In this document: positions 14,920 through 64,000 of the stretch, in pieces | Layout: each line of letters starts with the position of its first letter | How positions within the stretch are numbered: position 1 is the stretch's first letter | Made by a program: the position numbers and the translations under genes | From: Auanema rhodensis | Lineage: Eukaryota > Animalia > Nematoda | Length of the DNA stretch: 64,000 bases | Assembly (NCBI GenBank): GCA_964057225.1 | Contig: CAXKVF010000074.1 | Location: 310,001 to 374,000 of the forward strand | Direction of reading: 5' to 3' | Notes under the pieces: model-generated | Seen by the model: the letters and a program-made list of their open reading frames with translations, nothing else | Database searches by the model: none | Told to the model about the DNA's origin: nothing

Positions 14920-17900
14920 TTCCCCATGTCCATATTAGTCTAAAAACAAATTTTTATTGATATTGGTGCATGGTAACCATGACTTTGAAATTTACGTGAA
15001 CTTTAATTTATGCTAATTAAATGTACACGTGATGTGCACTTGGTATGTAACTCGCTTCACGTGAAAGATAAAGAGATGCGGTTTTCAAAATTAGATTCCC
15101 CATGTCCATATTAGGCTAAAAACAAATTTTTATTGATATTGGTGCATGGTAACCATGACTTTGAAATTTACGTGAACTTTAATTTATGCTAATTAAATGT
15201 ACACGTGATGTGCACTTGGTATGTAACTCGCTTCACGTGAAAGATAAAGAGATGCGGTTTTCAAAATTAGATTCCCCATGTCCATATTAGTCTAAAAACA
15301 AATTTTTATTGATATTGGTGCATGGTAACCATGACTTTGAAATTTACGTGAACTTTAATTTATGATAATTAAATGTACACGTGATGTGCACTTGGTATGT
15401 AACTCGCTTCACGTGAAAGATAAAGAGATGCGGTTTTCAAAATTAGATTCCCCATGTCCATATTAGTCTTAAAAACAAATTTTTATTGATATTGGTGCAT
15501 GGTAACCATGACTTTGAAATTTACGTGAACTTTAATTTATGCTAATTAAATGTACACGTGATGTGCACTTGGTATGTAACTCGCTTCACGTGAAAGATGA
15601 AGAGATGCGGTTTTCAAAATTAGATTCCCCATGTCCATATTAGTCTAAAAACAAATTTTTATTGATATTGGTGCATGGTAACCATGACTTTGAAATTTAC
15701 GTGAACTTTAATTTATGCTAATTAAATGTACACGTGATGTGCACTTGGTATGTAACTCGCTTCACGTGAAAGATAAAGAGATGCGGTTTTCAAAATTAGA
15801 TTCCCCATGTCCATATTAGTCTAAAAACAAATTTTTATTGATATTGGTGCATGGTAACCATGACTTTGAAATTTACGTGAACTTTAATTTATGCTAATTA
15901 AATGTACACGTGATGTGCACTTGGTATGTAACTCGCTTCACGTGAAAGATAAAGAGATGCGGTTTTCAAAATTAGATTCCCCATGTCCATATTAGTCTAA
16001 AAACAAATTTTTATTGATATTGGTGCATGGTAACCATGACTTTGAAATTTACGTGAACTTTAATTTATGCTAATTAAATGTACACGTGATGTGCACTTGA
16101 TATGTAACTCGCTTCACGTGAAAGATGAAGAGATGCGGTTTTCAAAATTAGATTCCCCATGTCCATATTAGTCTAAAAACAAATTTTTATTGATATTGGT
16201 GCATGGTAACCATGACTTTGAAATTTACGTGAACTTTAATTTATGCTAATTAAATGTACACGTGATGTGCACTTGGTATGTAACTCGCTTCACGTGAAAG
16301 ATAAAGAGATGCGGTTTTCAAAATTAGATTCCCCATGTCCATATTAGTCTAAAAACAAATTTTTATTGATATTGGTGCATGGTAACCATGACTTTGAAAT
16401 TTACGTGAACTTTAATTTATGCTAATTAAATGTACACGTGATGTGCACTTGGTATGTAACTCGCTTCACGTGAAAGATAAAGAGATGCGGTTTTCAAAAT
16501 TAGATTCCCCATGTCCATATTAGTCTAAAAACAAATTTTTATTGATATTGGTGCATGGTAACCATGACTTTGAAATTTACGTGAACTTTAATTTATGCTA
16601 ATTAAATGTACACGTGATGTGCACTTGGTATGTAACTCGCTTCACGTGAAAGATGAAGAGATGCGGTTTTCAAAATTAGATTCCCCATGTCCATATTAGT
16701 CTGAAAACAAATTTTTATTGATATTGGTGCATGGTAACCATGACTTTGAAATTTACGTGAACTTTAATTTATGCTAATTAAATGTACACGTGATGTGCAC
16801 TTGGTATGTAACTCGCTTCACGTGAAAGATAAAGAGATGCGGTTTTCAAAATTAGATTCCCCATGTCCATATTAGTCTAAAAACAAATTTTTATTGATAT
16901 TGGTGCATGGTAACCATGACTTTGAAATTTACGTGAACTTTAATTTATGCTAATTAAATGTACACGTGATGTGCACTTGGTATGTAACTCGCTTCACGTG
17001 AAAGATGAAGAGATGCGGTTTTCAAAATTAGATTCCCCATGTCCATATTAGTCTAAAAACAAATTTTTATTGATATTGCTTCATGGTAACCATGACTTTG
17101 AAATTTACGTGAACTTTAATTTATGCTAATTAAATGTACACGTGATGTGCACTTGGTATGTAACTCGCTTCACGTGAAAGATAAAGAGATGCGGTTTTCA
17201 AAATTAGATTCCCCATGTCCATATTAGTCTAAAAACAAATTTTTATTGATATTGGTGCATGGTAACCATGACTTTGAAATTTACGTGAACTTTAATTTAT
17301 GCTAATTAAATGTACACGTGATGTGCACTTGGTATGTAACTCGCTTCACGTGAAAGATGAAGAGATGCGGTTTTCAAAATTAGATTCCCCATGTCCATAT
17401 TAGTCTGAAAACAAATTTTTATTGATATTGGTGCATGGTAACCATGACTTTGAAATTTACGTGAACTTTAATTTATGCTAATTAAATGTACACGTGATGT
17501 GCACTTGGTATGTAACTCGCTTCACGTGAAAGATAAAGAGATGCGGTTTTCAAAATTAGATTCCCCATGTCCATATTAGTCTAAAAACAAATTTTTATTG
17601 ATATTGGTGCATGGTAACCATGACTTTGAAATTTACGTGAACTTTAATTTATGCTAATTAAATGTACACGTGATGTGCACTTGGTATGTAACTCGCTTCA
17701 CGTGAAAGATGAAGAGATGCGGTTTTCAAAATTAGATTCCCCATGTCCATATTAGTCTAAAAACAAATTTTTATTGATATTGCTTCATGGTAACCATGAC
17801 TTTGAAATTTACGTGAACTTTAATTTATGCTAATTAAATGTACACGTGATGTGCACTTGGTATGTAACTCGCTTCACGTGAAAGATAAAGAGATGCGGTT

Positions 17901-44200: not shown

Positions 44201-47200
44201 CTTTGAAATTTACGTGAACTTTAATTTATGCTAATTAAATGTACACGTGATGTGCACTTGGTATGTAACTCGCTTCACGTGAAAGATAAAGAGATGCGGT
44301 TTTCAAAATTAGATTCCCCATGTCCATATTAGTCTAAAAACAAATTTTTATTGATATTGGTTCATGGTAACCATGACTTTGAAATTTACGTGAACTTTAA
44401 TTTATGCTAATTAAATGTACACGTGATGTGCACTTGGTATGTAACTCGCTTCACGTGAAAGATAAAGAGATGCGGTTTTCAAAATTTGATTCCCCATGTC
44501 CATATTAGTCTAAAAACAAATTTTTATTGATATTGGTGCATGGTAACCATGACTTTGAAATTTACGTGAACTTTAATTTATGCTAATTAAATGTACACGT
44601 GATGTGCACTTGGTATGTAACTCGCTTCACGTGAAAGATAAAGAGATGCGGTTTTCAAAATTAGATTCCTCATGTCCATATTAGTCTAAAAACAAATTTT
44701 TATTGATATTGGTTCATGGTAACCATGACTTTGAAATTTACGTGAACTTTAATTTATGCTAATTAAATATACACGTGATGTGCACTTGGTATGTAACTCG
44801 CTTCACGTGAAAGATAAAGTGATGCGGTTTTCAAAATTAGATTCCCCATGTCCATATTAGTCTAAAAACAAATTTTTATTGATATTGGTTCATGGTAACC
44901 ATGACTTTGAAATTTACGTGAACTTTAATTTATGCTATTTAAATGTACACGTGATGTGCACTTGGTATGTAACTCGCTTCACGTGAAAGATAAAGAGATG
45001 CGGTTTTCAAAATTAGATTCCCCATGTCCATATTAGTCTAAAAACAAATTTTTATTGATATTGGTGCATGTTAACCATGACTTTGAAATTTACGTGAACT
45101 TTAATTTATGCTAATTAAATGTACACGTGATGTGCACTTGGTATGTAACTCGCTTCACGTGAAAGATAAAGAGATGCGGTTTTTAAAATTAGATTCCTCA
45201 TGTCCATATTAGTCTAAAAACAAATTTTTATTGATATTGGTGCATGGTAACCATGACTTTGAAATTTACGTGAACTTTAATTTATGCTAATTAAATGTAC
45301 ACGTGATGTGCACTTGGTATGTAACTCGCTTCACGTGAAAGATAAAGTGATGCGGTTTTCAAAATTAGATTCCCCATGTCCATATTAGTCTAAAAACAAA
45401 TTTTTATTGATATTGGTTCATGGTAACCATGACTTTGAAATTTACGTGAACTTTAATTTATGCTAATTAAATGTACACGTGATGTGCACTTGGTATGTAA
45501 CTCGCTTCACGTGAAAGATAAAGAGATGCGGTTTTCAAAATTTGATTCCCCATGTCCATATTAGTCTAAAAACAAATTTTTATTGATATTGGTGCATGGT
45601 AACCATGACTTTGAAATTTACGTGAACTTTAATTTATGCTAATTAAATGTACACGTGATGTGCACTTGGTATGTAACTCGCTTCACGTGAAAGATAAAGA
45701 GATGCGGTTTTCAAAATTAGATTCCTCATGTCCATATTAGTCTAAAAACAAATTTTTATTGATATTGGTGCATGGTAACCATGACTTTGAAATTTACGTG
45801 AACTTTAATTTATGCTAATTAAATGTACACGTGATGTGCACTTGGTATGTAACTCGCTTCACGTGAAAGATAAAGAGATGCGGTTTTCAAAATTAAATTC
45901 CCCATGTCCATATTAGTCTAAAAACAAATTTTTATTGATATTGGTGCATGGTAACCATGACTTTGAAATTTACGTGAACTTTAATTTATGCTAATTAAAT
46001 GTACACGTGATGTGCACTTGGTATGTAACTCGCTTCACGTGAAAGATAAAGAGATGCGGTTTTCAAAATTAGATTCCCCATGTCCATATTAGTCTAAAAA
46101 CAGATTTTTATTGATATTGGTGCATGGTAACCATGACTTTGAAATTTACGTGAACTTTAATTTATGCTAATTAAATGTACACGTGATGTGCACTTGGTAT
46201 GTAACTCGCTTCACGTGGACGATAAAGAGATGCGGTTTTCAAAATTAGATTCCCCATGTCCATATTAGTCTAAAAAAAAATTTTTATTGATATTGGTGCA
46301 TGGTAACCATGACTTTGAAATTTACGTGAACTTTAATTTATGCTAATTAAATGTACACTTGATGTGCACTTGGTATGTAACTCGCTTCACGTGAAAGATA
46401 AAGAGATGCGGTTTTCAAAATTAGATTGCCCATGTCCATATTAGTCTAAAAACAAATTTTTATTGATATTGGTGCATGGTAACCATGACTTTGAAATTTA
46501 CGTGAACTTTAATTTATGCTAATTAAATGTACACGTGACGTGCACTTGGTATGTAACTCGCTTCACGTGGAAGATAAAGAGATGCGGTTTTCAAAATTAG
46601 ATTCCCCATGTCCATATTAGTCTAAAAACAAATTTTTATTGATATTGGTGCATGGTAACCATGACTTTGAAATTTACGTGAACTTTAATTTATGCTAATT
46701 GAATGTACACGTGATGTGCACTTGGTATGTAACTCGCTTCACGTGAAAGATAAAGAGATGCGGTTTTCAAAATTAGATTGCCCATGTCCATATTAGTCTA
46801 AAAACAAATTTTTATTGATATTGGTGCATGGTAACCATGACTTTGAAATTTACGTGAACTTTAATTTATGCTAATTAAATGTACACGTGATGTGCACTTG
46901 GTATGTAACTCGCTTCACGTGAAAGATAAAGAGATGCGGTTTTCAAAGTTAGATTCCCCATGTCCATATTAGTCTAAAAACGAATTTTTATTGATATTGG
47001 TGCATGGTAACCACGACTTTGAAATTTACGTGAACTTTAATTTATGCTAATTAAATGTACACGTGATGTGCACTTGGTATGTAACTCGCTTCACGTGAAA
47101 GATAAAGAGATGCGGTTTTCAAAATTAGATTCCTCATGTCCATATTAGTCTAAAAACAAATTTTTATTGATATTGGTGCATGGTAACCATGACTTTGAAA

Positions 47201-47522
47201 TTTACGTGAACTTTAATTTATGCTAATTAAATGTACACGTGATGTGCACTTGGTATGTAACTCGCTTCACGTGAAAGATAAAGAGATGCGGTTTTCAAAA
47301 TTAGATTTCTCATGTCCATATTAGTCTAAAAAAAAATTTTTATTGATATTGGTGCATGGTAACCATGACTTTGAAATTTACGTGAACTTTAATTTATGCT
47401 AATTAAATGTACACGTGATGTGCACTTGGTATGTAACTCGCTTCACGTGAAAGATAAAGAGATGCGGTTTTCAAAATTAGATTCCCCATGTCCATATTAG
47501 TCTAAAAAAAAATTTTTATTGA

Positions 47523-47661
47523 TATTGGTGCATGGTAACCATGACTTTGAAATTTACGTGAACTTTAATTTATGCTGATTAAATGTACACTTGATGTGCG
47601 CTTGGTATGTAACTCGCTTCACGTGCATGTCCATATTAGTCTAAAAACAAATTTTTATTGA
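47523..47661 (+). repeat. Truncated 139-bp monomer (37-bp deletion of monomer pos 104-140)
   Basis: Junction CTTCACGTG|CATGTCC at 47625/47626; AAAGATAAAGAGATGCGGTTTTCAAAATTAGATTCCC is missing. Confidence 0.97.
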
Positions 47662-50600
47662 TATTGGTGCATGGTAACCATGACTTTGAAATTTACGTGA
47701 ACTTTAATTTATGCTAATTAAATGTACACGTGATGTGCACTTGGTATGTAACTCGCTTCACGTGAAAGATAAAGAGATGCGGTTTTCAAAGTTAGATTCC
47801 CCATGTCCATATTAGTCTAAAAACGAATTTTTATTGATATTGGTGCATGGTAACCACGACTTTGAAATTTACGTGAACTTTAATTTATGCTAATTAAATG
47901 TACACGTGATGTGCACTTGGTATGTAACTCGCTTCACGTGAAAGATAAAGAGATGCGGTTTTCAAAATTAGATTCCTCATGTCCATATTAGTCTAAAAAC
48001 AAATTTTTATTGATATTGGTGCATGGTAACCATGACTTTGAAATTTACGTGAACTTTAATTTATGCTAATTAAATGTACACGTGATGTGCACTTGGTATG
48101 TAACTCGCTTCACGTGAAAGATAAAGAGATGCGGTTTTCAAAATTAGATTTCTCATGTCCATATTAGTCTAAAAAAAAATTTTTATTGATATTGGTGCAT
48201 GGTAACCATGACTTTGAAATTTACGTGAACTTTAATTTATGCTAATTAAATGTACACGTGATGTGCACTTGGTATGTAACTCGCTTCACGTGAAAGATAA
48301 AGAGATGCGGTTTTCAAAATTAGATTCCCCATGTCCATATTAGTCTAAAAAAAAATTTTTATTGATATTGGTGCATGGTAACCATGACTTTGAAATTTAC
48401 GTGAACTTTAATTTATGCTGATTAAATGTACACTTGATGTGCGCTTGGTATGTAACTCGCTTCACGTGAAAGATAAAGAGATGCGGTTTTCAAAATTAGA
48501 TTCCCCATGTCCATATTAGTCTAAAAACAAATTTTTATTGATATTGGTGCATGGTAACCATGACTTTGAAATTTACGTGAACTTTAATTTATGCTAATTA
48601 AATGTACACGTGATGTGCACTTGGTATGTAACTCGCTTCACGTGAAAGATAAAGAGATGCGGTTTTCAAAATTAGATTCCTCATGTCCATATTAGTCTAA
48701 AAACAAATTTTTATTGATATTGGTGCATGGTAACCATGACTTTGAAATTTACGTGAACTTTAATTTATGCTAATTAAATGTACACGTGATGTGCACTTGG
48801 TATGTAACTCGCTTCACGTGAAAGATAAAGAGATGCGGTTTTCAAAATTAGATTCCCCATGTCCATATTAGTCTAAAAACAAATTTTTATTGATATTGGT
48901 TCATGGTAACCATGACTTTGAAATTTACGTGAACTTTAATTTATGCTAATTAAATGTACACGTGATGTGCACTTGGTATGTAACTCGCTTCACGTGAAAG
49001 ATAAAGAGATGCGGTTTTCAAAATTTGATTCCCCATGTCCATATTAGTCTAAAAACAAATTTTTATTGATATTGGTGCATGGTAACCATGACTTTGAAAT
49101 TTACGTGAACTTTAATTTATGCTAATTAAATGTACACGTGATGTGCACTTGGTATGTAACTCGCTTCACGTGAAAGATAAAGAGATGCGGTTTTCAAAAT
49201 TAGATTCCTCATGTCCATATTAGTCTAAAAACAAATTTTTATTGATATTGGTGCATGGTAACCATGACTTTGAAATTTACGTGAACTTTAATTTATGCTA
49301 ATTAAATGTACACGTGATGTGCACTTGGTATGTAACTCGCTTCACGTGAAAGATAAAGAGATGCGGTTTTCAAAATTAGATTCCCCATGTCCATATTAGT
49401 CTAAAAACAAATTTTTATTGATATTGGTTCATGGTAACCATGACTTTGAAATTTACGTGAACTTTAATTTATGCTAATTAAATGTACACGTGATGTGCAC
49501 TTGGTATGTAACTCGCTTCACGTGAAAGATAAAGAGATGCGGTTTTCAAAATTTGATTCCCCATGTCCATATTAGTCTAAAAACAAATTTTTATTGATAT
49601 TGGTGCATGGTAACCATGACTTTGAAATTTACGTGAACTTTAATTTATGCTAATTAAATGTACACGTGATGTGCACTTGGTATGTAACTCGCTTCACGTG
49701 AAAGATAAAGAGATGCGGTTTTCAAAATTAGATTCCCCCTGTCCATATTAGTCTAAAAACAAATTTTTATTGATATTGGTTCATGGTAACCATGACTTTG
49801 AAATTTACGTGAACTTTAATTTATGCTAATTAAATGTACACGTGATGTGCACTTGGTATGTAACTCGCTTCACGTGAAAGATAAAGAGATGCGGTTTTCA
49901 AAATTTGATTCCCCATGTCCATATTAGTCTAAAAACAAATTTTTATTGATATTGGTGCATGGTAACCATGACTTTGAAATTTACGTGAACTTTAATTTAT
50001 GCTAATTAAATGTACACGTGATGTGCACTTGGTATGTAACTCGCTTCACGTGAAAGATAAAGAGATGCGGTTTTCAAAATTAGATTCCCCATGTCCATAT
50101 TAGTCTAAAAACAAATTTTTATTGATATTGGTTCATGGTAACCATGACTTTGAAATTTACGTGAACTTTAATTTATGCTAATTAAATGTACACGTGATGT
50201 GCACTTGGTATGTAACTCGCTTCACGTGAAAGATAAAGAGATGCGGTTTTCAAAATTAGATTCACCATGTCCATATTAGTCTAAAAACAAATTTTTATTG
50301 ATATTGGTTCATGGTAACCATGACTTTGAATTTTACGTGAACTTTAATTTATGCTAATTAAATGTACACGTGATGTGCACTTGGTATGTAACTCGCTTCA
50401 CGTGAAAGATAAAGAGATGCGGTTTTCAAAATAAGATTCACCATGTCCATATTAGTCTAAAAACAAATTTTTATTGATATTGGTTCATGGTAACCATGAC
50501 TTTGAATTTTACGTGAACTTTAATTTATGCTAATTAAATGTACACGTGATGTGCACTTGGTATGTAACTCGCTTCACGTGAAAGATAAAGAGATGCGGTT

Positions 50601-53600: not shown

Positions 53601-56600
53601 TAGATTCCCCATGTCCATATTAGTCTAAAAACAAATTTTTATTGATATTGGTGCATGGTAACCATGACTTTGAAATTTACGTGAACTTTAATTTATGCTA
53701 ATTAAATGTACACGTGATGTGCACTTGGTATGTAACTCGCTTCACGTGAAAGATAAAGAGATGCGGTTTTCAAAATTAGATTCCCCATGTCCATATTAGT
53801 CTAAAAACAAATTTTTATTGATATTGGTGCATGGTAACCATGACTTTGAAATTTACGTGAACTTTAATTTATGCTAATTAAATGTACACGTGATGTGCAC
53901 TTGGTATGTAACTCGCTTCACGTGAAAGATAAAGAGATGCGGTTTTCAAAATTAGATTCCCCATGTCCATATTAGTCTAAAAACAAATTTTTATTGATAT
54001 TGGTTTATGGTAACCATGACTTTGAAATTTACGTGAACTTTAATTTATGCTAATTAAATGTACACGTGATGTGCACTTGGTATGTAACTCGCTTCACGTG
54101 AAAGATAAAGAGATGCGGTTTTCAAAATTAGATTCCCCATGTCCATATTAGTCTAAAAACAAATTTTTATTGATATTGGTGCATGGTAACCATGACTTTG
54201 AAATTTACGTGAACTTTAATTTATGCTAATTAAATGTACACGTGATGTGCACTTGGTATGTAACTCGCTTCACGTGAAAGATAAAGAGATGCGGTTTTCA
54301 AAATTAGATTCCCCATGTCCATATTAGTCTAAAAACAAATTTTTATTGATATTGGTGCATGGTAACCATGACTTTGAAATTTACGTGAACTTTAATTTAT
54401 GCTAATTAAATGTACACGTGATGTGCACTTGGTATGTAACTCGCTTCACGTGAAAGATAAAGAGATGCGGTTTTCAAAATTAGATTCCCCATGTCCATAT
54501 TAGTCTTAAAACAAATTTTTATTGATATTGGTGCATGGTAACCATGACTTTGAAATTTACGTGAACTTTAATTTATGCTAATTAAATGTACACGTGATGT
54601 GCACTTGGTATGTAACTCGCTTCACGTGAAAGATAAAGAGATGCGGTTTTCAAAATTAGATTCCCCATGTCCATATTAGTCTAAAAACAAATTTTTATTG
54701 ATATTGATGCATGGTAACCATGACTTTGAAATTTACGTGAACTTTAATTTATGCTAATTAAATGTACACGTGATGTGCACTTGGTATGTAACTCGCTTCA
54801 CGTGAAAGATAAAGAGATGCGGTTTTCAAAATTAGATTCCCCATGTCCATATTAGTCTAAAAACAGATTTTTATTGATATTGGTGCATGGTAACCATGAC
54901 TTTGAAATTTACGTGAACTTCAATTTATGCTAATTAAATGTACACGTGATGTGCACTTGGTATGTAACTCGCTTCACGTGAAAGATAAAGAGATGCGGTT
55001 TTCAAAATTAGATTCCCCATGTCCATATTAGTCTAAAAACAAATTTTTATTGATATTGGTTCATGGTAACCATGACTTTGAAATTTACGTGAACTTTAAT
55101 TTATGCTAATTAAATGTACACGTGATGTGCACTTGGTATGTAACTCGCTTCACGTGAAAGATAAAGAGATGCGGTTTTCAAAATTAGATTCCCCATGTCC
55201 ATATTAGTCTAAAAACAAATTTTTATTGATATTGGTGCATGGTAACCATGACTTTGAAATTTACGTGAACTTTAATTTATGCTAATTAAATGTACACGTG
55301 ATGTGCACTTGGTATGTAACTCGCTTCACGTGAAAGATGAAGAGATGCCGTTTTCAAAATTAGATTCCCCATGTCCATATTAGTCTAAAAACAAATTTTT
55401 ATTGATATTGGTGCATGGTAACCATGACTTTGAAATTTACGTGAACTTTAATTTATGCTAATTAAATGTACACGTGATGTGCACTTGGTATGTAACTCGC
55501 TTCACGTGAAAGATAAAGAGATGCGGTTTTCAAAATTAGATTCCCCATGTCCATATTAGTCTAAAAACAAATTTTTATTGATATTGGTGCATGGTAACCA
55601 TGACTTTGAAATTTACGTGAACTTTAATTTATGCTAATTAAATGTACACGTGATGTGCACTTGGTATGTAACTCGCTTCACGTGAAAGATAAAGAGATGC
55701 GGTTTTCAAAATTAGATTCCCCATGTCCATATTAGTCTAAAAACAAATTTTTATTGATATTGATGCATGGTAACCATGACTTTGAAATTTACGTGAACTT
55801 TAATTTATGCTAATTAAATGTACACGTGATGTGCACTTGGTATGTAACTCGCTTCACGTGAAAGATAAAGAGATGCGGTTTTCAAAATTAGATTCCCCAT
55901 GTCCATATTAGTCTAAAAACAGATTTTTATTGATATTGGTGCATGGTAACCATGACTTTGAAATTTACGTGAACTTCAATTTATGCTAATTAAATGTACA
56001 CGTGATGTGCACTTGGTATGTAACTCGCTTCACGTGAAAGATAAAGAGATGCGGTTTTCAAAATTAGATTCCCCATGTCCATATTAGTCTAAAAACAAAT
56101 TTTTATTGATATTGGTTCATGGTAACCATGACTTTGAAATTTACGTGAACTTTAATTTATGCTAATTAAATGTACACGTGATGTGCACTTGGTATGTAAC
56201 TCGCTTCACGTGAAAGATAAAGAGATGCGGTTTTCAAAATTAGATTCCCCATGTCCATATTAGTCTAAAAACAAATTTTTATTGATATTGGTGCATGGTA
56301 ACCATGACTTTGAAATTTACGTGAACTTTAATTTATGCTAATTAAATGTACACGTGATGTGCACTTGGTATGTAACTCGCTTCACGTGAAAGATGAAGAG
56401 ATGCCGTTTTCAAAATTAGATTCCCCATGTCCATATTAGTCTAAAAACAAATTTTTATTGATATTGGTGCATGGTAACCATGACTTTGAAATTTACGTGA
56501 ACTTTAATTTATGCTAATTAAATGTACACGTGATGTGCACTTGGTATGTAACTCGCTTCACGTGAAAGATAAAGAGATGCGGTTTTCAAAATTAGATTCC

Positions 56601-59600
56601 CCATGTCCATATTAGTCTAAAAACAAATTTTTATTGATATTGGTGCATGGTAACCATGACTTTGAAATTTACGTGAACTTTAATTTATGCTAATTAAATG
56701 TACACGTGATGTGCACTTGGTATGTAACTCGCTTCACGTGAAAGATAAAGAGATGCGGTTTTCAAAATTAGATTCCCCATGTCCATATTAGTCTTAAAAC
56801 AAATTTTTATTGATATTGGTGCATGGTAACCATGACTTTGAAATTTACGTGAACTTTAATTTATGCTAATTAAATGTACACGTGATGTGCACTTGGTATG
56901 TAACTCGCTTCACGTGAAAGATAAAGAGATGCGGTTTTCAAAATTAGATTCCCCATGTCCATATTAGTCTAAAAACAAATTTTTCTTGATATTGGTTCAT
57001 GGTAACCATGACTTTGAAATTTACGTGAACTTTAATTTATGCTAATTAAATGTACACGTGATGTGCACTTGGTATGTAACTCGCTTCACGTGAAAGATAA
57101 AGAGATGCGGTTTTCAAAATTAGATTCCCCATGTCCATATTAGTCTAAAAACAAATTTTTATTGATATTGATGCATGGTAACCATGACTTTGAAATTTAC
57201 GTGAACTTTAATTTATGCTAATTAAATGTACACGTGATGTGCACTTGGTATGTAACTCGCTTCACGTGAAAGATGAAGAGATGCGGTTTTCAAAATTAGA
57301 TTCCTCATGTCCATATTAGTCTAAAAACAAATTTTTATTGATATTGGTTCATGGTAACCATGACTTTGAAATTTACGTGAACTTTAATTTATGCTAATTA
57401 AATGTACACGTGATGTGCACTTGGTATGTAACTCGTTTCACGTGAAAGATAAAGAGATGAGGTTTTCAAAATTAGATTCCCCATGTCCATATTAGTCTAA
57501 AAACAAATTTTTATTGATATTGGTGCATGGTAACCATGACTTTGAAATTTACGTGAACTTTAATTTATGCTAATTAAATGTACACGTGATGTGCACTTGG
57601 TATGTAACTCGCTTCACGTGAAAGATAAAGAGATGCGGTTTTCAAAATTAGATTCCCCATGTCCATATTAGTCTAAAAACAAATTTTTATTGATATTGGT
57701 GCATGGTAACCATGACTTTGAAATTTACGTGAACTTTAATTTATGCTAATTAAATGTACACGTGATGTGCACTTGGTATGTAACTCGCTTCACGTGAAAG
57801 ATAAAGAGATGCGGTTTTCAAAATTAGATTCCCCATGTCCATATTAGTCTAAAAACAAATTTTTATTGATATTGGTTTATGGTAACCATGACTTTGAAAT
57901 TTACGTGAACTTTAATTTATGCTAATTAAATGTACACGTGATGTGCACTTGGTATGTAACTCGCTTCACGTGAAAGATAAAGAGATGCGGTTTTCAAAAT
58001 TAGATTCCCCATGTCCATATTAGTCTAAAAACAAATTTTTATTGATATTGGTGCATGGTAACCATGACTTTGAAATTTACGTGAACTTTAATTTATGCTA
58101 ATTAAATGTACACGTGATGTGCACTTGGTATGTAACTCGCTTCACGTGAAAGATAAAGAGATGCGGTTTTCAAAATTAGATTCCCCATGTCCATATTAGT
58201 CTAAAAACAAATTTTTATTGATATTGGTGCATGGTAACCATGACTTTGAAATTTACGTGAACTTTAATTTATGCTAATTAAATGTACACGTGATGTGCAC
58301 TTGGTATGTAACTCGCTTCACGTGAAAGATAAAGAGATGCGGTTTTCAAAATTAGATTCCCCATGTCCATATTAGTCTTAAAACAAATTTTTATTGATAT
58401 TGGTGCATGGTAACCATGACTTTGAAATTTACGTGAACTTTAATTTATGCTAATTAAATGTACACGTGATGTGCACTTGGTATGTAACTCGCTTCACGTG
58501 AAAGATAAAGAGATGCGGTTTTCAAAATTAGATTCCCCATGTCCATATTAGTCTAAAAACAAATTTTTATTGATATTGGTTCATGGTAACCATGACTTTG
58601 AAATTTACGTGAACTTTAATTTATGCTAATTAAATGTACACGTGATGTGCACTTGGTATGTAACTCGCTTCACGTGAAAGATAAAGAGATGCGGTTTTCA
58701 AAATTAGATTCCCCATGTCCATATTAGTCTAAAAACAAATTTTTATTGATATTGATGCATGGTAACCATGACTTTGAAATTTACGTGAACTTTAATTTAT
58801 GCTAATTAAATGTACACGTGATGTGCACTTGGTATGTAACTCGCTTCACGTGAAAGATGAAGAGATGCGGTTTTCAAAATTAGATTCCTCATGTCCATAT
58901 TAGTCTAAAAACAAATTTTTATTGATATTGGTTCATGGTAACCATGACTTTGAAATTTACGTGAACTTTAATTTATGCTAATTAAATGTACACGTGATGT
59001 GCACTTGGTATGTAACTCGTTTCACGTGAAAGATAAAGAGATGAGGTTTTCAAAATTAGATTCCCCATGTCCATATTAGTCTAAAAACAAATTTTTATTG
59101 ATATTGGTGCATGGTAACCATGACTTTGAAATTTACGTGAACTTTAATTTATGCTAATTAAATGTACACGTGATGTGCACTTGGTATGTAACTCGCTTCA
59201 CGTGAAAGATAAAGAGATGCGGTTTTCAAAATTAGATTCCCCATGTCCATATTAGTCTAAAAACAAATTTTTATTGATATTGGTGCATGGTAACCATGAC
59301 TTTGAAATTTACGTGAACTTTAATTTATGCTAATTAAATGTACACGTGATGTGCACTTGGTATGTAACTCGCTTCACGTGAAAGATAAAGAGATGCGGTT
59401 TTCAAAATTAGATTCCCCATGTCCATATTAGTCTAAAAACAAATTTTTATTGATATTGGTTTATGGTAACCATGACTTTGAAATTTACGTGAACTTTAAT
59501 TTATGCTAATTAAATGTACACGTGATGTGCACTTGGTATGTAACTCGCTTCACGTGAAAGATAAAGAGATGCGGTTTTCAAAATTAGATTCCCCATGTCC

Positions 59601-60509
59601 ATATTAGTCTAAAAACAAATTTTTATTGATATTGGTTCATGGTAACCATGACTTTGAAATTTACGTGAACTTTAATTTATGCTAATTAAATGTACACGTG
59701 ATGTGCACTTGGTATGTAACTCGCTTCACGTGAAAGATAAAGAGATGCGGTTTTCAAAATTAGATTCCCCATGTCCATATTAGTCTAAAAACAAATTTTT
59801 ATTGATATTGGTGCATGGTAACCATGACTTTGAAATTTACGTGAACTTTAATTTATGCTAATTAAATGTACACGTGATGTGCACTTGGTATGTAACTCGC
59901 TTCACGTGAAAGATAAGGAGATGCGGTTTTCAAAATTAGATTCCCCATGTCCATATTAGTCTAAAAACAAATTTTTATTGATATTGGTTCATGGTAACCA
60001 TGACTTTGAAATTTACGTGAACTTTAATTTATGCTAATTAAATGTACACGTGATGTGCACTTGGTATGTAACTCGCTTCACGTGAAAGATAAAGAGATGC
60101 GGTTTTCAAAATTAGATTCCCCATGTCCATATTAGTCTAAAAACAAATTTTTATTGATATTGATGCATGGTAACCATGACTTTGAAATTTACGTGAACTT
60201 TAATTTATGCTAATTAAATGTACACGTGATGTGCACTTGGTCTGTAACTCGTTTCACGTGAAAGATAAAGAGATGAGGTTTTCAAAATTAGATTCCCCAT
60301 GTCCATATTAGTCTAAAAACAAATTTTTATTGATATTGGTGCATGGTAACCATGACTTTGAAATTTACGTGAACTTTAATTTATGCTAATTAAATGTACA
60401 CGTGATGTGCACTTGGTATGTAACTCGCTTCACGTGAAAGATAAAGAGATGCGGTTTTCAAAATTAGATTCCCCATGTCCATATTAGTCTAAAAACAAAT
60501 TTTTATTGA

Positions 60510-60613
60510 TATTGGTGCATGGTAACCATGACTTTGAAATTTACGTGAACTTTAATTTATGCTAATTAAATGTACACGTGATGTGCACTTGGTATGTAAC
60601 TCGCTTCACGTGA
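60510..60613 (+). repeat. Truncated 104-bp monomer (72-bp deletion of pos 105-176, 3-bp TGA microhomology)
   Basis: TTCACGTGA is followed directly by TATTGGTTCATGG. TGA at 60611-60613 can be read as pos 102-104 or 174-176. Confidence 0.96.
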
Positions 60614-60646
60614 TATTGGTTCATGGTAACCATGACTTTGAAATTT

Positions 60647-61110
60647 GGGGAATCTAATTTTGAAAACCGCATCTCTTTATCTTTCACGTGAAGCGAGTTA
60701 CATACCAAGTGCACATCACGTGTACATTTAATTAGCATAAATTAAAATTCACGTAAATTTCAAAGTCATGGTTACCATGCACCAATATCAATAAAAATTT
60801 GTTTTTAGACTAATATGGACATGGGGAATCTAATTTTGAAAACCGCATCTCTTTATCTTTCACGTGAAGCGAGTTACATACCAAGAGCACATCACGTGTA
60901 CATTTAATTAGCATAAATTAAAGTTCACGTAAATTTCAAAGTCATGGTTACCATGCACCAATATCAATAAAAATTTGTTTTTAGACTAATATGGACATGG
61001 GGAATCTAATTTTGAAAACCGCATCTCTTTATCTTTCACGTGAAGCGAGTTACATACCAAGTGCACATCACGTGTACATTTAATTAGCATAAATTAAAGT
61101 TCACGTAAAT
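60647..61110 (-). repeat. 464-bp inverted block of the same satellite (about 2.6 monomers)
   Basis: GGGGAATCTAATTTTGAAAACCGCATCTC...AAAGTTCACGTAAAT is the reverse complement of the monomer. It runs from monomer pos 141 back through one full monomer to pos 30 (141+176+147=464). Confidence 0.98.
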
Positions 61111-61111
61111 G

Positions 61112-64000
61112 TGCGGTTTTCAAAATTAGATTCCCCATGTCCATATTAGTCTAAAAACAAATTTTTATTGATATTGGTTCATGGTAACCATGACTTTGAA
61201 ATTTACGTGAACTTTAATTTATGCTAATTAAATGTACACGTGATGTGCACTTGGTATGTAACTCGCTTCACGTGCATGTCCATATTAGTCTAAAAACAAA
61301 TTTTTATTGATATTGGTGCATGGTAACCATGACTTTGAAATTTACGTGAACTTTAATTTATGCTAATTAAATGTACACGTGATGTGCACTTGGTATGTAA
61401 CTCGCTTCACGTGAAAGATAAAGAGATGCGGTTTTCAAAATTAGATTCCCCATGTCCATATTAGTCTAAAAACAAATTTTTATTGATATTGGTTCATGGT
61501 AACCATGACTTTGAAATTTACGTGAACTTTAATTTATGCTAATTAAATGTACACGTGATGTGCACTTGGTATGTAACTCGCTTCACGTGAAAGATAAAGA
61601 GATGCGGTTTTCAAAATTAGATTCCCCATGTCCATATTAGTCTAAAAACAAATTTTTATTGATATTGGTGCATGCTAACCATGACTTTGAAATTTACGTG
61701 AACTTTAATTTATGCTAATTAAATGTACACGTGATGTGCATTTGGTATGTAACTCGCTTCACGTGAAAGATAAAGAGATGCGGTTTTCAAAATTAGATTC
61801 ACCATGTCCATATTAGTCTAAAAACAAATTTTTATTGATATTGGTTCATGGTAACCATGACTTTGAAATTTACGTGAACTTTAATTTATGCTAATTAAAT
61901 GTACACGTGATGTGCACTTGGTATGTAACTCGCTTCACGTGAAAGATAAAGAGATGCGGTTTTCAAAATTAGATTCCCCATGTCCATATTAGTCTAAAAA
62001 CAAATTTTTATTGATATTGGTTCATGGTAACCATGACTTTGAAATTTACGTGAACTTTAATTTATGCTAATTAAATGTACACGTGATGTGCACTTGGTAT
62101 GTAACTCGCTTCACGTGAAAGATAAAGAGATGCGGTTTTCAAAATTAGATTCCCCATGTCCATATTAGTCTAAAAACAAATTTTTATTGATATTGGTGCA
62201 TGGTAACCATGACTTTGAAATTTACGTGAACTTTAATTTATGCTAATTAAATGTACACGTGATGTGCACTTGGTATGTAACTCGCTTCACGTGAAAGATA
62301 AAGAGATGCGGTTTTCAAAATTAGATTCCCCTTGTCCATATTAGTCTAAAAACAAATTTTTATTGATATTGGTTCATGGTAACCATGACTTTGAAATTTA
62401 CGTGAACTTTAATTTATGCTAATTAAATGTACACGTGATGTGCACTTGGTATGTAACTCGCTTCACGTGAAAGATAAAGAGATGCGGTTTTCAAAATTAG
62501 ATTCCCCATGTCCATATTAGTCTAAAAACAAATTTTTATTGATATTGGTTCATGGTAACCATGACTTTGAAATTTACGTGAACTTTAATTTATGCTAATT
62601 AAATGTACACGTGATGTGCACTTGGTATGTAACTCGCTTCACGTGAAAGATAAAGAGATGCGGTTTTCAAAATTAGATTCCCCATGTCCATATTAGTCTA
62701 AAAACAAATTTTTATTGATATTGGTGCATGGTAACCATGACTTTGAAATTTACGTGAACTTTAATTTATGCTAATTAAATGTACACGTGATGTGCACTTG
62801 GTATGTAACTCGCTTCACGTGAAAGATAAAGAGATGCGGTTTTCAAAATTAGATTCCCCTTGTCCATATTAGTCTAAAAACAAATTTTTATTGATATTGG
62901 TTCATGGTAACCATGACTTTGAAATTTACGTGAACTTTAATTTATGCTAATTAAATGTACACGTGATGTGCACTTGGTATGTAACTCGCTTCACGTGAAA
63001 GATAAAGAGATGCGGTTTTCAAAATTAGATTCCCCATGTCCATATTAGTCTAAAAACAAATTTTTATTGATATTGGTTCATGGTAACCATGACTTTGAAA
63101 TTTACGTGAACTTTAATTTATGCTAATTAAATGTACACGTGATGTGCACTTGGTATGTAACTCGCTTCACGTGAAAGATAAAGAGATGCGGTTTTCAAAA
63201 TTAGATTCCCCATGTCCATATTAGTCTAAAAACAAATTTTTATTGATATTGGTGCATGGTAACCATGACTTTGAAATTTACGTGAACTTTAATTTATGCT
63301 AATTAAATGTACACGTGATGTGCACTTGGTATGTAACTCGCTTCACGTGAAAGATAAGGAGATGCGGTTTTCAAAATTAGATTCCCCATGTCCATATTAG
63401 TCTAAAAACAAATTTTTATTGATATTGGTTCATGGTAACCATGACTTTGAAATTTACGTGAACTTTAATTTATGCTAATTAAATGTACACGTGATGTGCA
63501 CTTGGTATGTAACTCGCTTCACGTGAAAGATAAAGAGATGCGGTTTTCAAAATTAGATTCCCCATGTCCATATTAGTCTAAAAACAAATTTTTATTGATA
63601 TTGATGCATGGTAACCATGACTTTGAAATTTACGTGAACTTTAATTTATGCTAATTAAATGTACACGTGATGTGCACTTGGTATGTAACTCGTTTCACGT
63701 GAAAGATAAAGAGATGAGGTTTTCAAAATTAGATTCCCCATGTCCATATTAGTCTAAAAACAAATTTTTATTGATATTGGTGCATGGTAACCATGACTTT
63801 GAAATTTACGTGAACTTTAATTTATGCTAATTAAATGTACACGTGATGTGCACTTGGTATGTAACTCGCTTCACGTGAAAGATAAAGAGATGCGGTTTTC
63901 AAAATTAGATTCCCCATGTCCATATTAGTCTAAAAACAAATTTTTATTGATATTGGTGCATGGTAACCATGACTTTAAAATTTACGTGAACTTTAATTTA
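61112..64000 (+). repeat. 176-bp satellite array, forward orientation resumed; runs off the window end
   Basis: Resumes at monomer pos 117 (TGCGGTTTTC). Monomer starts at 61172, 61311 (after a 37-bp deletion) and so on to 63951. Confidence 0.99.
61172..61310 (+). repeat. Second truncated 139-bp monomer with the identical 37-bp deletion
   Basis: Junction CTTCACGTG|CATGTCC at 61274/61275. Confidence 0.97.

Follow-up and report, generated by a model that had tools for sequence, protein, structure and literature searches.

The stretch of DNA considered here, to which we refer as the window, comprises 64,000 nucleotides of the nematode Auanema rhodense (positions 310001-374000 of a 959-kb contig designated C81). 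It is filled by a single AT-rich satellite array with a 176-bp monomer and ~98% identity (Tandem Repeats Finder). A consensus was derived from 334 exact-length units, with position 1 set at TATTGG, and each 13-mer of the window was placed by its consensus position and strand; all genome-wide matches refer to the 180,911,798-base assembly. This report concerns a rearrangement scar in the array, where four novel joints (J1-J4) were found by the 13-mer map at 60613-61275, that is, within 661 bp, and enclose an inverted tract of 464 bp.

By the match to its published probe, the array is the AT-1 satellite of Auanema rhodense, which is restricted to the germline and lost from the soma: the 28-nt AT-1 probe for fluorescence in situ hybridization is the exact reverse complement of consensus positions 61-88. 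On the inverted tract, the probe sequence can be read directly, at approximately 60700-60727. The preprint on the germline genome of Auanema rhodense presents a PacBio HiFi assembly and describes tandem repeats that extend over multiple megabases and undergo elimination from somatic cells; AT-1 is listed there as an eliminated repeat of the autosomes, and the HiFi coverage of the repeats is ~29-fold, mostly with uniquely mapping reads. Two thirds of the germline DNA of this species consist of such repeats and are discarded from the soma. In the assembly, matches to the satellite were found on contigs C1, C3 and C4 and on numerous unplaced contigs. Satellite words from 60400-61500 are also present in public runs under six organism labels from six studies. 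A connection with the elimination motif (SFE) was considered and rejected: the preprint gives just 15 strong matches to it in all eliminated DNA, so the satellite units do not contain it.

The scar can be described base by base along the forward strand. The final forward monomer before it (60510-60613) stops at consensus position 104, and J1 (60613/60614, both sides forward) joins this position to position 1; the trinucleotide TGA is common to both sides, with positions 102-104 equal to positions 174-176. It is followed by a 33-bp forward piece (60614-60646), which corresponds to positions 1-33 with the substitution G8T and terminates at the palindrome AAATTT. At J2 (60646/60647), the plus strand is exchanged for the minus strand: position 33 is followed by minus-strand position 141 with a 1-nt overlap (T). 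The inverted tract itself (60647-61110, minus strand) is 464 bp or 2.64 monomers long, runs from position 141 down to position 30, and contains two substitutions, C41T (60747) and A78T (60886). J3 includes an extra G (61111), which matches the continuation of neither strand, between minus-strand position 30 and forward position 117. The next forward piece has a length of 163 bp (61112-61274); it covers positions 117-176 and then 1-103, again with G8T, and stops directly after the CACGTG of positions 98-103. Finally, J4 (61274/61275, both sides forward) is a blunt joint of position 103 to position 141 without microhomology, and the forward array proceeds from position 141 onward.

Two short segments occur in both orientations at the ends of the tract. 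Positions 30-33 are forward at 60643-60646 and have an inverted copy at 61107-61110, while positions 117-141 are inverted at 60647-60671 and forward at 61112-61136. The microhomology at J1, J2, J3 and J4 amounts to 3, 1, 0 (plus one inserted G) and 0 nt, respectively, and exceeds the chance level at J1 alone (P(>=3 nt) = 0.05).

The original prediction, made from the letters of the window, described the same structure. Its junction coordinates and strand assignments were all reproduced to the base by the 13-mer map, and its four junction k-mers were all found in the window; it was also right about the TGA microhomology at J1 and the 1-nt T homology at J2. Its statement that no other strand switch occurs in the 64 kb is borne out by the strand map of the entire window, where the 464-bp tract is the single minus-strand block. 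The long inverted repeats that it proposed are real: the arms reach 465 nt at 99%, with arms of 163-465 nt and spacers of 70-229 nt, and their ability to form hairpins is upheld by prediction, which gives -265 and -196 kcal/mol for the single strand (z of -51 and -36). No function is evident for the scar, which leaves the array with a pair of long inverted repeats.

The arithmetic of the scar deserves a separate comment. The original prediction summed the individual changes as -72+4+1+25-37 = -79 bp and pointed out that the total matches the observed phase shift. The bookkeeping is right, but it lends the model no support, because the two values are equal by construction. Within a tandem array, losing d bp is equivalent to gaining 176-d (plus whole units); therefore, deletions and duplications can be tallied in more than one way. 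The right side of the scar can equally be presented as a 25-bp duplication, an added G and a 37-bp deletion, or as a 1-bp overlap at position 141 with a 164-bp forward filler; similarly, J4 is equally a 37-bp deletion or a 139-bp duplication. For J1, the alternatives are a deletion of 72 bp and a duplication of 104 bp, of which the deletion is better supported. The order of monomers (a recombinant or marker unit, a blank one, another blank one, and a unit with G8T) is common to four paralogous blocks, and three paralogous blocks are colinear with the array on the left side of J2; since J1 sits within the second blank unit and the G8T unit comes next in its place, J1 would be a deletion of 72 bp.

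The exact junction words were then counted in the 181-Mb assembly, as had been suggested along with the original prediction. The J1 17-mer, the J2 20-mer and the J3 23-mer each occur once, so these three joints are private to the scar. This is not the case for J4: its 20-mer, counted in its exact form only, has two occurrences, 61274/5 and 47625/6. The background rate of joints was estimated from the window together with another 220 kb of C81, about 283-284 kb in total. The added 220 kb contain many 1-bp homopolymer shifts, but only three non-homopolymer joints other than those of the scar were found in the total: 47626, C81:63807 and C81:68709. The joint at C81:63807 is a 3-bp duplication of ACG inside the CACGTG of positions 98-103. 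The one at C81:68709 is a 16-bp tandem duplication of positions 57-72, which ends directly after the CACGTGA of positions 66-71, the insertion site of a long interspersed nuclear element (LINE); it could be an empty target-site duplication. No strand switches were found in the further 220 kb mapped.

Given the background joints, an inversion would have two or more extra joints within 1 kb of it with a probability of 5.6e-5. Since such joints are rare (3 others per 283 kb) and yet four of them lie within 661 bp, the four joints of the scar are causally linked, although linked joints are not necessarily simultaneous; whether the cluster represents one multi-break event or a series is, in our opinion, about evenly balanced. 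A separate observation concerns the orientation of the satellite along the contig: its matches are on the minus strand at C81:275215-287886 and on the plus strand at 250 kb and 292 kb, which implies that, 25-35 kb before the window begins, the strand switches at least twice more.

The second occurrence of the J4 word belongs to a perfect tandem duplication on the forward strand (46783-48468) with a unit of 843 bp (4 x 176 + 139), and its joint at 47625/47626 is likewise a blunt 103|141. The two 843-bp copies have 0 mismatches, the identity at offset 843 begins and ends exactly at the ends of the unit, and 11 variants repeat at that offset. Accordingly, 47625/6 is the novel joint of a young out-of-register tandem duplication. 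This locus is 13.6 kb away from J4, and the left flanks of the two joints differ at three sites within 50 bp (A55G, G69T and A78G). Copying of J4 from the 47.6-kb joint, or the reverse, is unlikely, as the conversion tract would have to be shorter than 26 bp on the left side and the joint at 47626 is de novo. Either the blunt 103|141 joint apparently formed twice, once in each background, or a very short conversion tract carried it from one to the other.

A census of joints with position 141 as the acceptor was swamped by the common double substitution C139T+C140T, and four 'TGCATGTCC' matches on contig C1 (5.18-5.21 Mb) came up in it. The 'TGCATGTCCATATTAGTCT' matches at C1:5180844, 5186508, 5187794 and 5210900, which are missed by the exact J4 20-mer, may represent either 103|141 joints against a variant background or joints of the 12|145 kind via CATG.

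The origin of the inverted tract can be approached through its variants. C41T and A78T of the tract are absent from both flanks; conversely, the tract has none of the features of its neighbours, which are G6A, A85C, C95T and C119A in the upstream monomers and G8T and the 103|141 joint in the downstream ones. Apart from the inverted tract, the adjacent pair of A78T followed by C41T has a single occurrence in the assembly, on contig C4, and the copy there is already different from the tract. A nearby forward template for the tract was not found, each local candidate differing from it by at least two variants. This weakens a purely replicative reading, such as fork stalling and template switching (FoSTeS) or microhomology-mediated break-induced replication (MMBIR), and fits a resident segment inverted in place. 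An empty-site paralogue representing the state before the event was not found in the genome either; the marker monomers are unique, including the right-flank unit with G13C+C79T.

It would be tempting to regard the tract as a fold-back or mirror copy of its flanks; however, this is scarcely credible. The tract starts at position 141, whereas a mirror would start at position 33, and the variants disagree on both sides, so that solely heavy later mutation or conversion could rescue the idea. Fold-back priming at the AAATTT palindrome was rejected on similar grounds, as the sequence past J2 is not a mirror of the upstream one. A strand switch via self-complementarity of the monomer was rejected as well: the best self-reverse-complement diagonal of the monomer scores 84/176 (shuffles give 72 +/- 4 with a maximum of 88), and the diagonals on which J2 and J3 fall are different ones, with 42-44/176.

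We believe that the scar is probably the result of an inversion in place, with low-homology rejoining and accompanying out-of-register joints. A resident segment of 2.64 monomers, extending from position 30 of one unit to position 141 two units on, would have been turned round essentially in place, its ends being reconnected through end joining that used little homology or none. The two extra out-of-register joints, 33 bp to the left and 163 bp to the right, would have been produced in the same episode or as its direct consequence. If the ends are paired in monomer coordinates, ...33 and 30... overlap by 4 nt, while ...141 of the tract and 141... of the array past J4 overlap by 1 nt. We infer that these ends are the two sides of two staggered breaks, since overlaps of 4 and 1 nt are expected from such breaks with fill-in. 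The original prediction had proposed an in-place inversion with 4 bp and 25 bp duplicated at its ends; this is plausible inasmuch as the end overlaps fit it, but the 25-bp/37-bp part of its bookkeeping is one of two equivalent readings. In its microhomology, the scar resembles low-homology end joining more than copying driven by microhomology. The repair itself may have been low-homology end joining (of the non-homologous or the polymerase-theta type) or a short series of template switches, which are inseparable from the sequence alone.

Several facts weigh against this explanation. A joint of the J4 type is independently present at 47625/6 and so can arise alone. The sister block (63071 onward) has seven marker units in common with the block of the scar, and it is five units shorter between the shared G6A/C95T/C119A and C139A markers; this could fit a net gain of ~801 bp at the scar rather than an inversion in place, C139A being a weak anchor and unequal exchange being frequent in the array. 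The array is ~99% uniform, so its history is not uniquely reconstructable. Finally, the satellite is present in Logan contigs of 55-60 bp, which fit many places, and none of them demonstrably bridges a joint.

The original prediction favoured a single replicative event of serial template switching (FoSTeS/MMBIR-like), in which the nascent strand would jump four times, once onto the complementary strand. This explanation agrees with the clustering of the four joints, with every jump being shorter than 500 bp, with the order and orientation retained by the 33-bp and 163-bp forward pieces, and with the 3-nt microhomology at J1. The linkage of the joints, which their clustering demonstrates, is the part of this proposal that stands; that the event was single and that it proceeded by switching is undemonstrated, considering the weak microhomology and the lack of a nearby template. 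The homology is 0-1 nt at three of the four joints, a copied tract should match a template in the vicinity whereas the A78T/C41T pair has no local source, and a clear gain in copy number is not seen. We consider template switching possible but doubtful. An assembly or read artefact, i.e., a chimeric read or a mis-join, is very improbable. It could be argued that C81 is an unplaced satellite contig and that the best public run holds a fraction of 0.79 of the sampled words; missing words are, however, expected, because rare variants of high-copy repeats are lost from contigs. From a chimeric read, or from one with a missed adapter, a single switch with long mirror arms would be expected and not a 464-bp inverted stretch that is followed by forward sequence again and accompanied by two more register shifts. 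The 464-bp tract with forward sequence on both sides is well within the length of one HiFi read, and even the 661-bp cluster is far below it; a ~29-fold consensus would remove errors of single reads.

The joints could also have accumulated in steps: a two-break inversion would have come first, and its inverted repeats would have provoked the deletions or duplications at J1 and J4 in subsequent generations. Palindromes and inverted repeats are unstable, and J1 and J4 are each located in or beside one of the arms capable of forming a hairpin (163-465 nt, with the spacers of 70-229 nt). The second 103|141 joint (47625/6) indicates that a J4-type joint is able to form independently. At the same time, J1 and J4 leave the inverted repeats in place, a pair of 427-nt arms with a 70-nt spacer persisting, and copies with a subset of J1-J3 are absent from the assembly. 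The order of the joints is not derivable from the sequence alone, and we hold the stepwise origin to be rather unlikely.

One further suggestion is made tentatively, and we ourselves think it unlikely to be correct: the satellite may break preferentially just 3' of ACGTG (ACRTG^), so that a sequence-preferring nick, break or polymerase stall would shape the rearrangement of the array. All four forward-to-forward non-homopolymer joints counted in 284 kb (J1, J4, 47626 and C81:68709) have an upstream end that can be placed exactly after ACGTG, given the ambiguity of placement. The corresponding probability is 6.5e-7, or 3.8e-5 if J4 and 47626 are counted once, although these values are post hoc and the monomer has three such sites. 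The acceptor position 141 is a look-alike on the reverse strand (ACATG^GGGAAT vs ACGTG^AAAGAT), and five of the eight ends in the scar are at an ACGTG site or at this look-alike, or within 1 nt of them.

The LINE mentioned above (a 973-aa frame with RVT_1; two copies plus two found by pattern) joins the satellite after the CACG(T) of the CACGTG at positions 66-71. Its 3' junctions with the (TTTG)n tail are at L031 ~3290, L033 ~432, C4:182746 and C82:133168, and are antisense to the forward strand of the satellite. The endonuclease of this element was rejected as the direct source of the breaks at J1 and J4, as all four LINE junctions are in the CACGTG of positions 66-71 and none is in that of positions 98-103.

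Several features of the array around the scar and beyond it can be recorded. A higher-order structure is visible at 55054-64000 and just beyond, where a 9-unit (1584-bp) block is repeated at 57166 and 58750. The recombinant unit with G6A+C95T+C119A is located at 60158 and 63599, and a string of seven marker units common to 59630-60646 and 63071-64302 defines the sister blocks. In the first 47 kb of the window, the only other phase shifts are 1-bp insertions at 15470 and 20751, in the run of A at positions 157-161. In C81:1-17400, a 1-bp homopolymer register shift is found approximately every 0.5 kb, as against one per several kb or more deeper in the contig; this shift-rich portion reflects either greater age and divergence of the array at its edge or a lower quality of the consensus.

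We regard the scar as a base-resolved case of a uniform tandem array that gained a short inverted patch together with out-of-register units. Such events are the raw material of satellite turnover. The scar can also serve as the seed for a genome-wide census of joints, which could show whether the breaks prefer certain sites and whether the driving force in the evolution of the array is end joining or errors in copying.

With respect to known systems, the scar is a further case of the known types of break-repair scars. It resembles FoSTeS/MMBIR and chromoanasynthesis in the clustering of its joints in cis, in the pattern of deletion, inversion and duplication, and in the short jumps; it differs from FoSTeS/MMBIR in its weak microhomology (3, 1, 0 and 0 nt), in the lack of a template found for the tract and of a clear gain in copy number. 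Polymerase-theta end joining in C. elegans (Roerink et al. 2014, PMC4032859; van Schendel et al. 2015, PMC4490562) leaves deletions of ~50-200 bp, homology of at least 1 nt at most joints and short inserts templated by the flanks. The nematode germline, J1 (if taken as a 72-bp deletion with 3 nt of homology) and J2 (1 nt) would agree with this footprint, while J3 and J4 have no homology and the 464-bp tract is much longer than the short templated inserts. Templated insertion could account for the forward pieces of 33 bp and 163 bp, their consensus-like sequence being untraceable to a source. The inversions studied by Ranz et al. 2007 (PMC1885836) originated from staggered breaks and are flanked by short inverted duplications. 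They are chromosomal, whereas the scar spans hundreds of bases within a tandem repeat and includes two extra out-of-register joints. Nevertheless, the ends of the tract overlap the forward flanks just as in that model, by 4 bp (positions 30-33) on the left and by 25 bp (positions 117-141) or 1 bp on the right.

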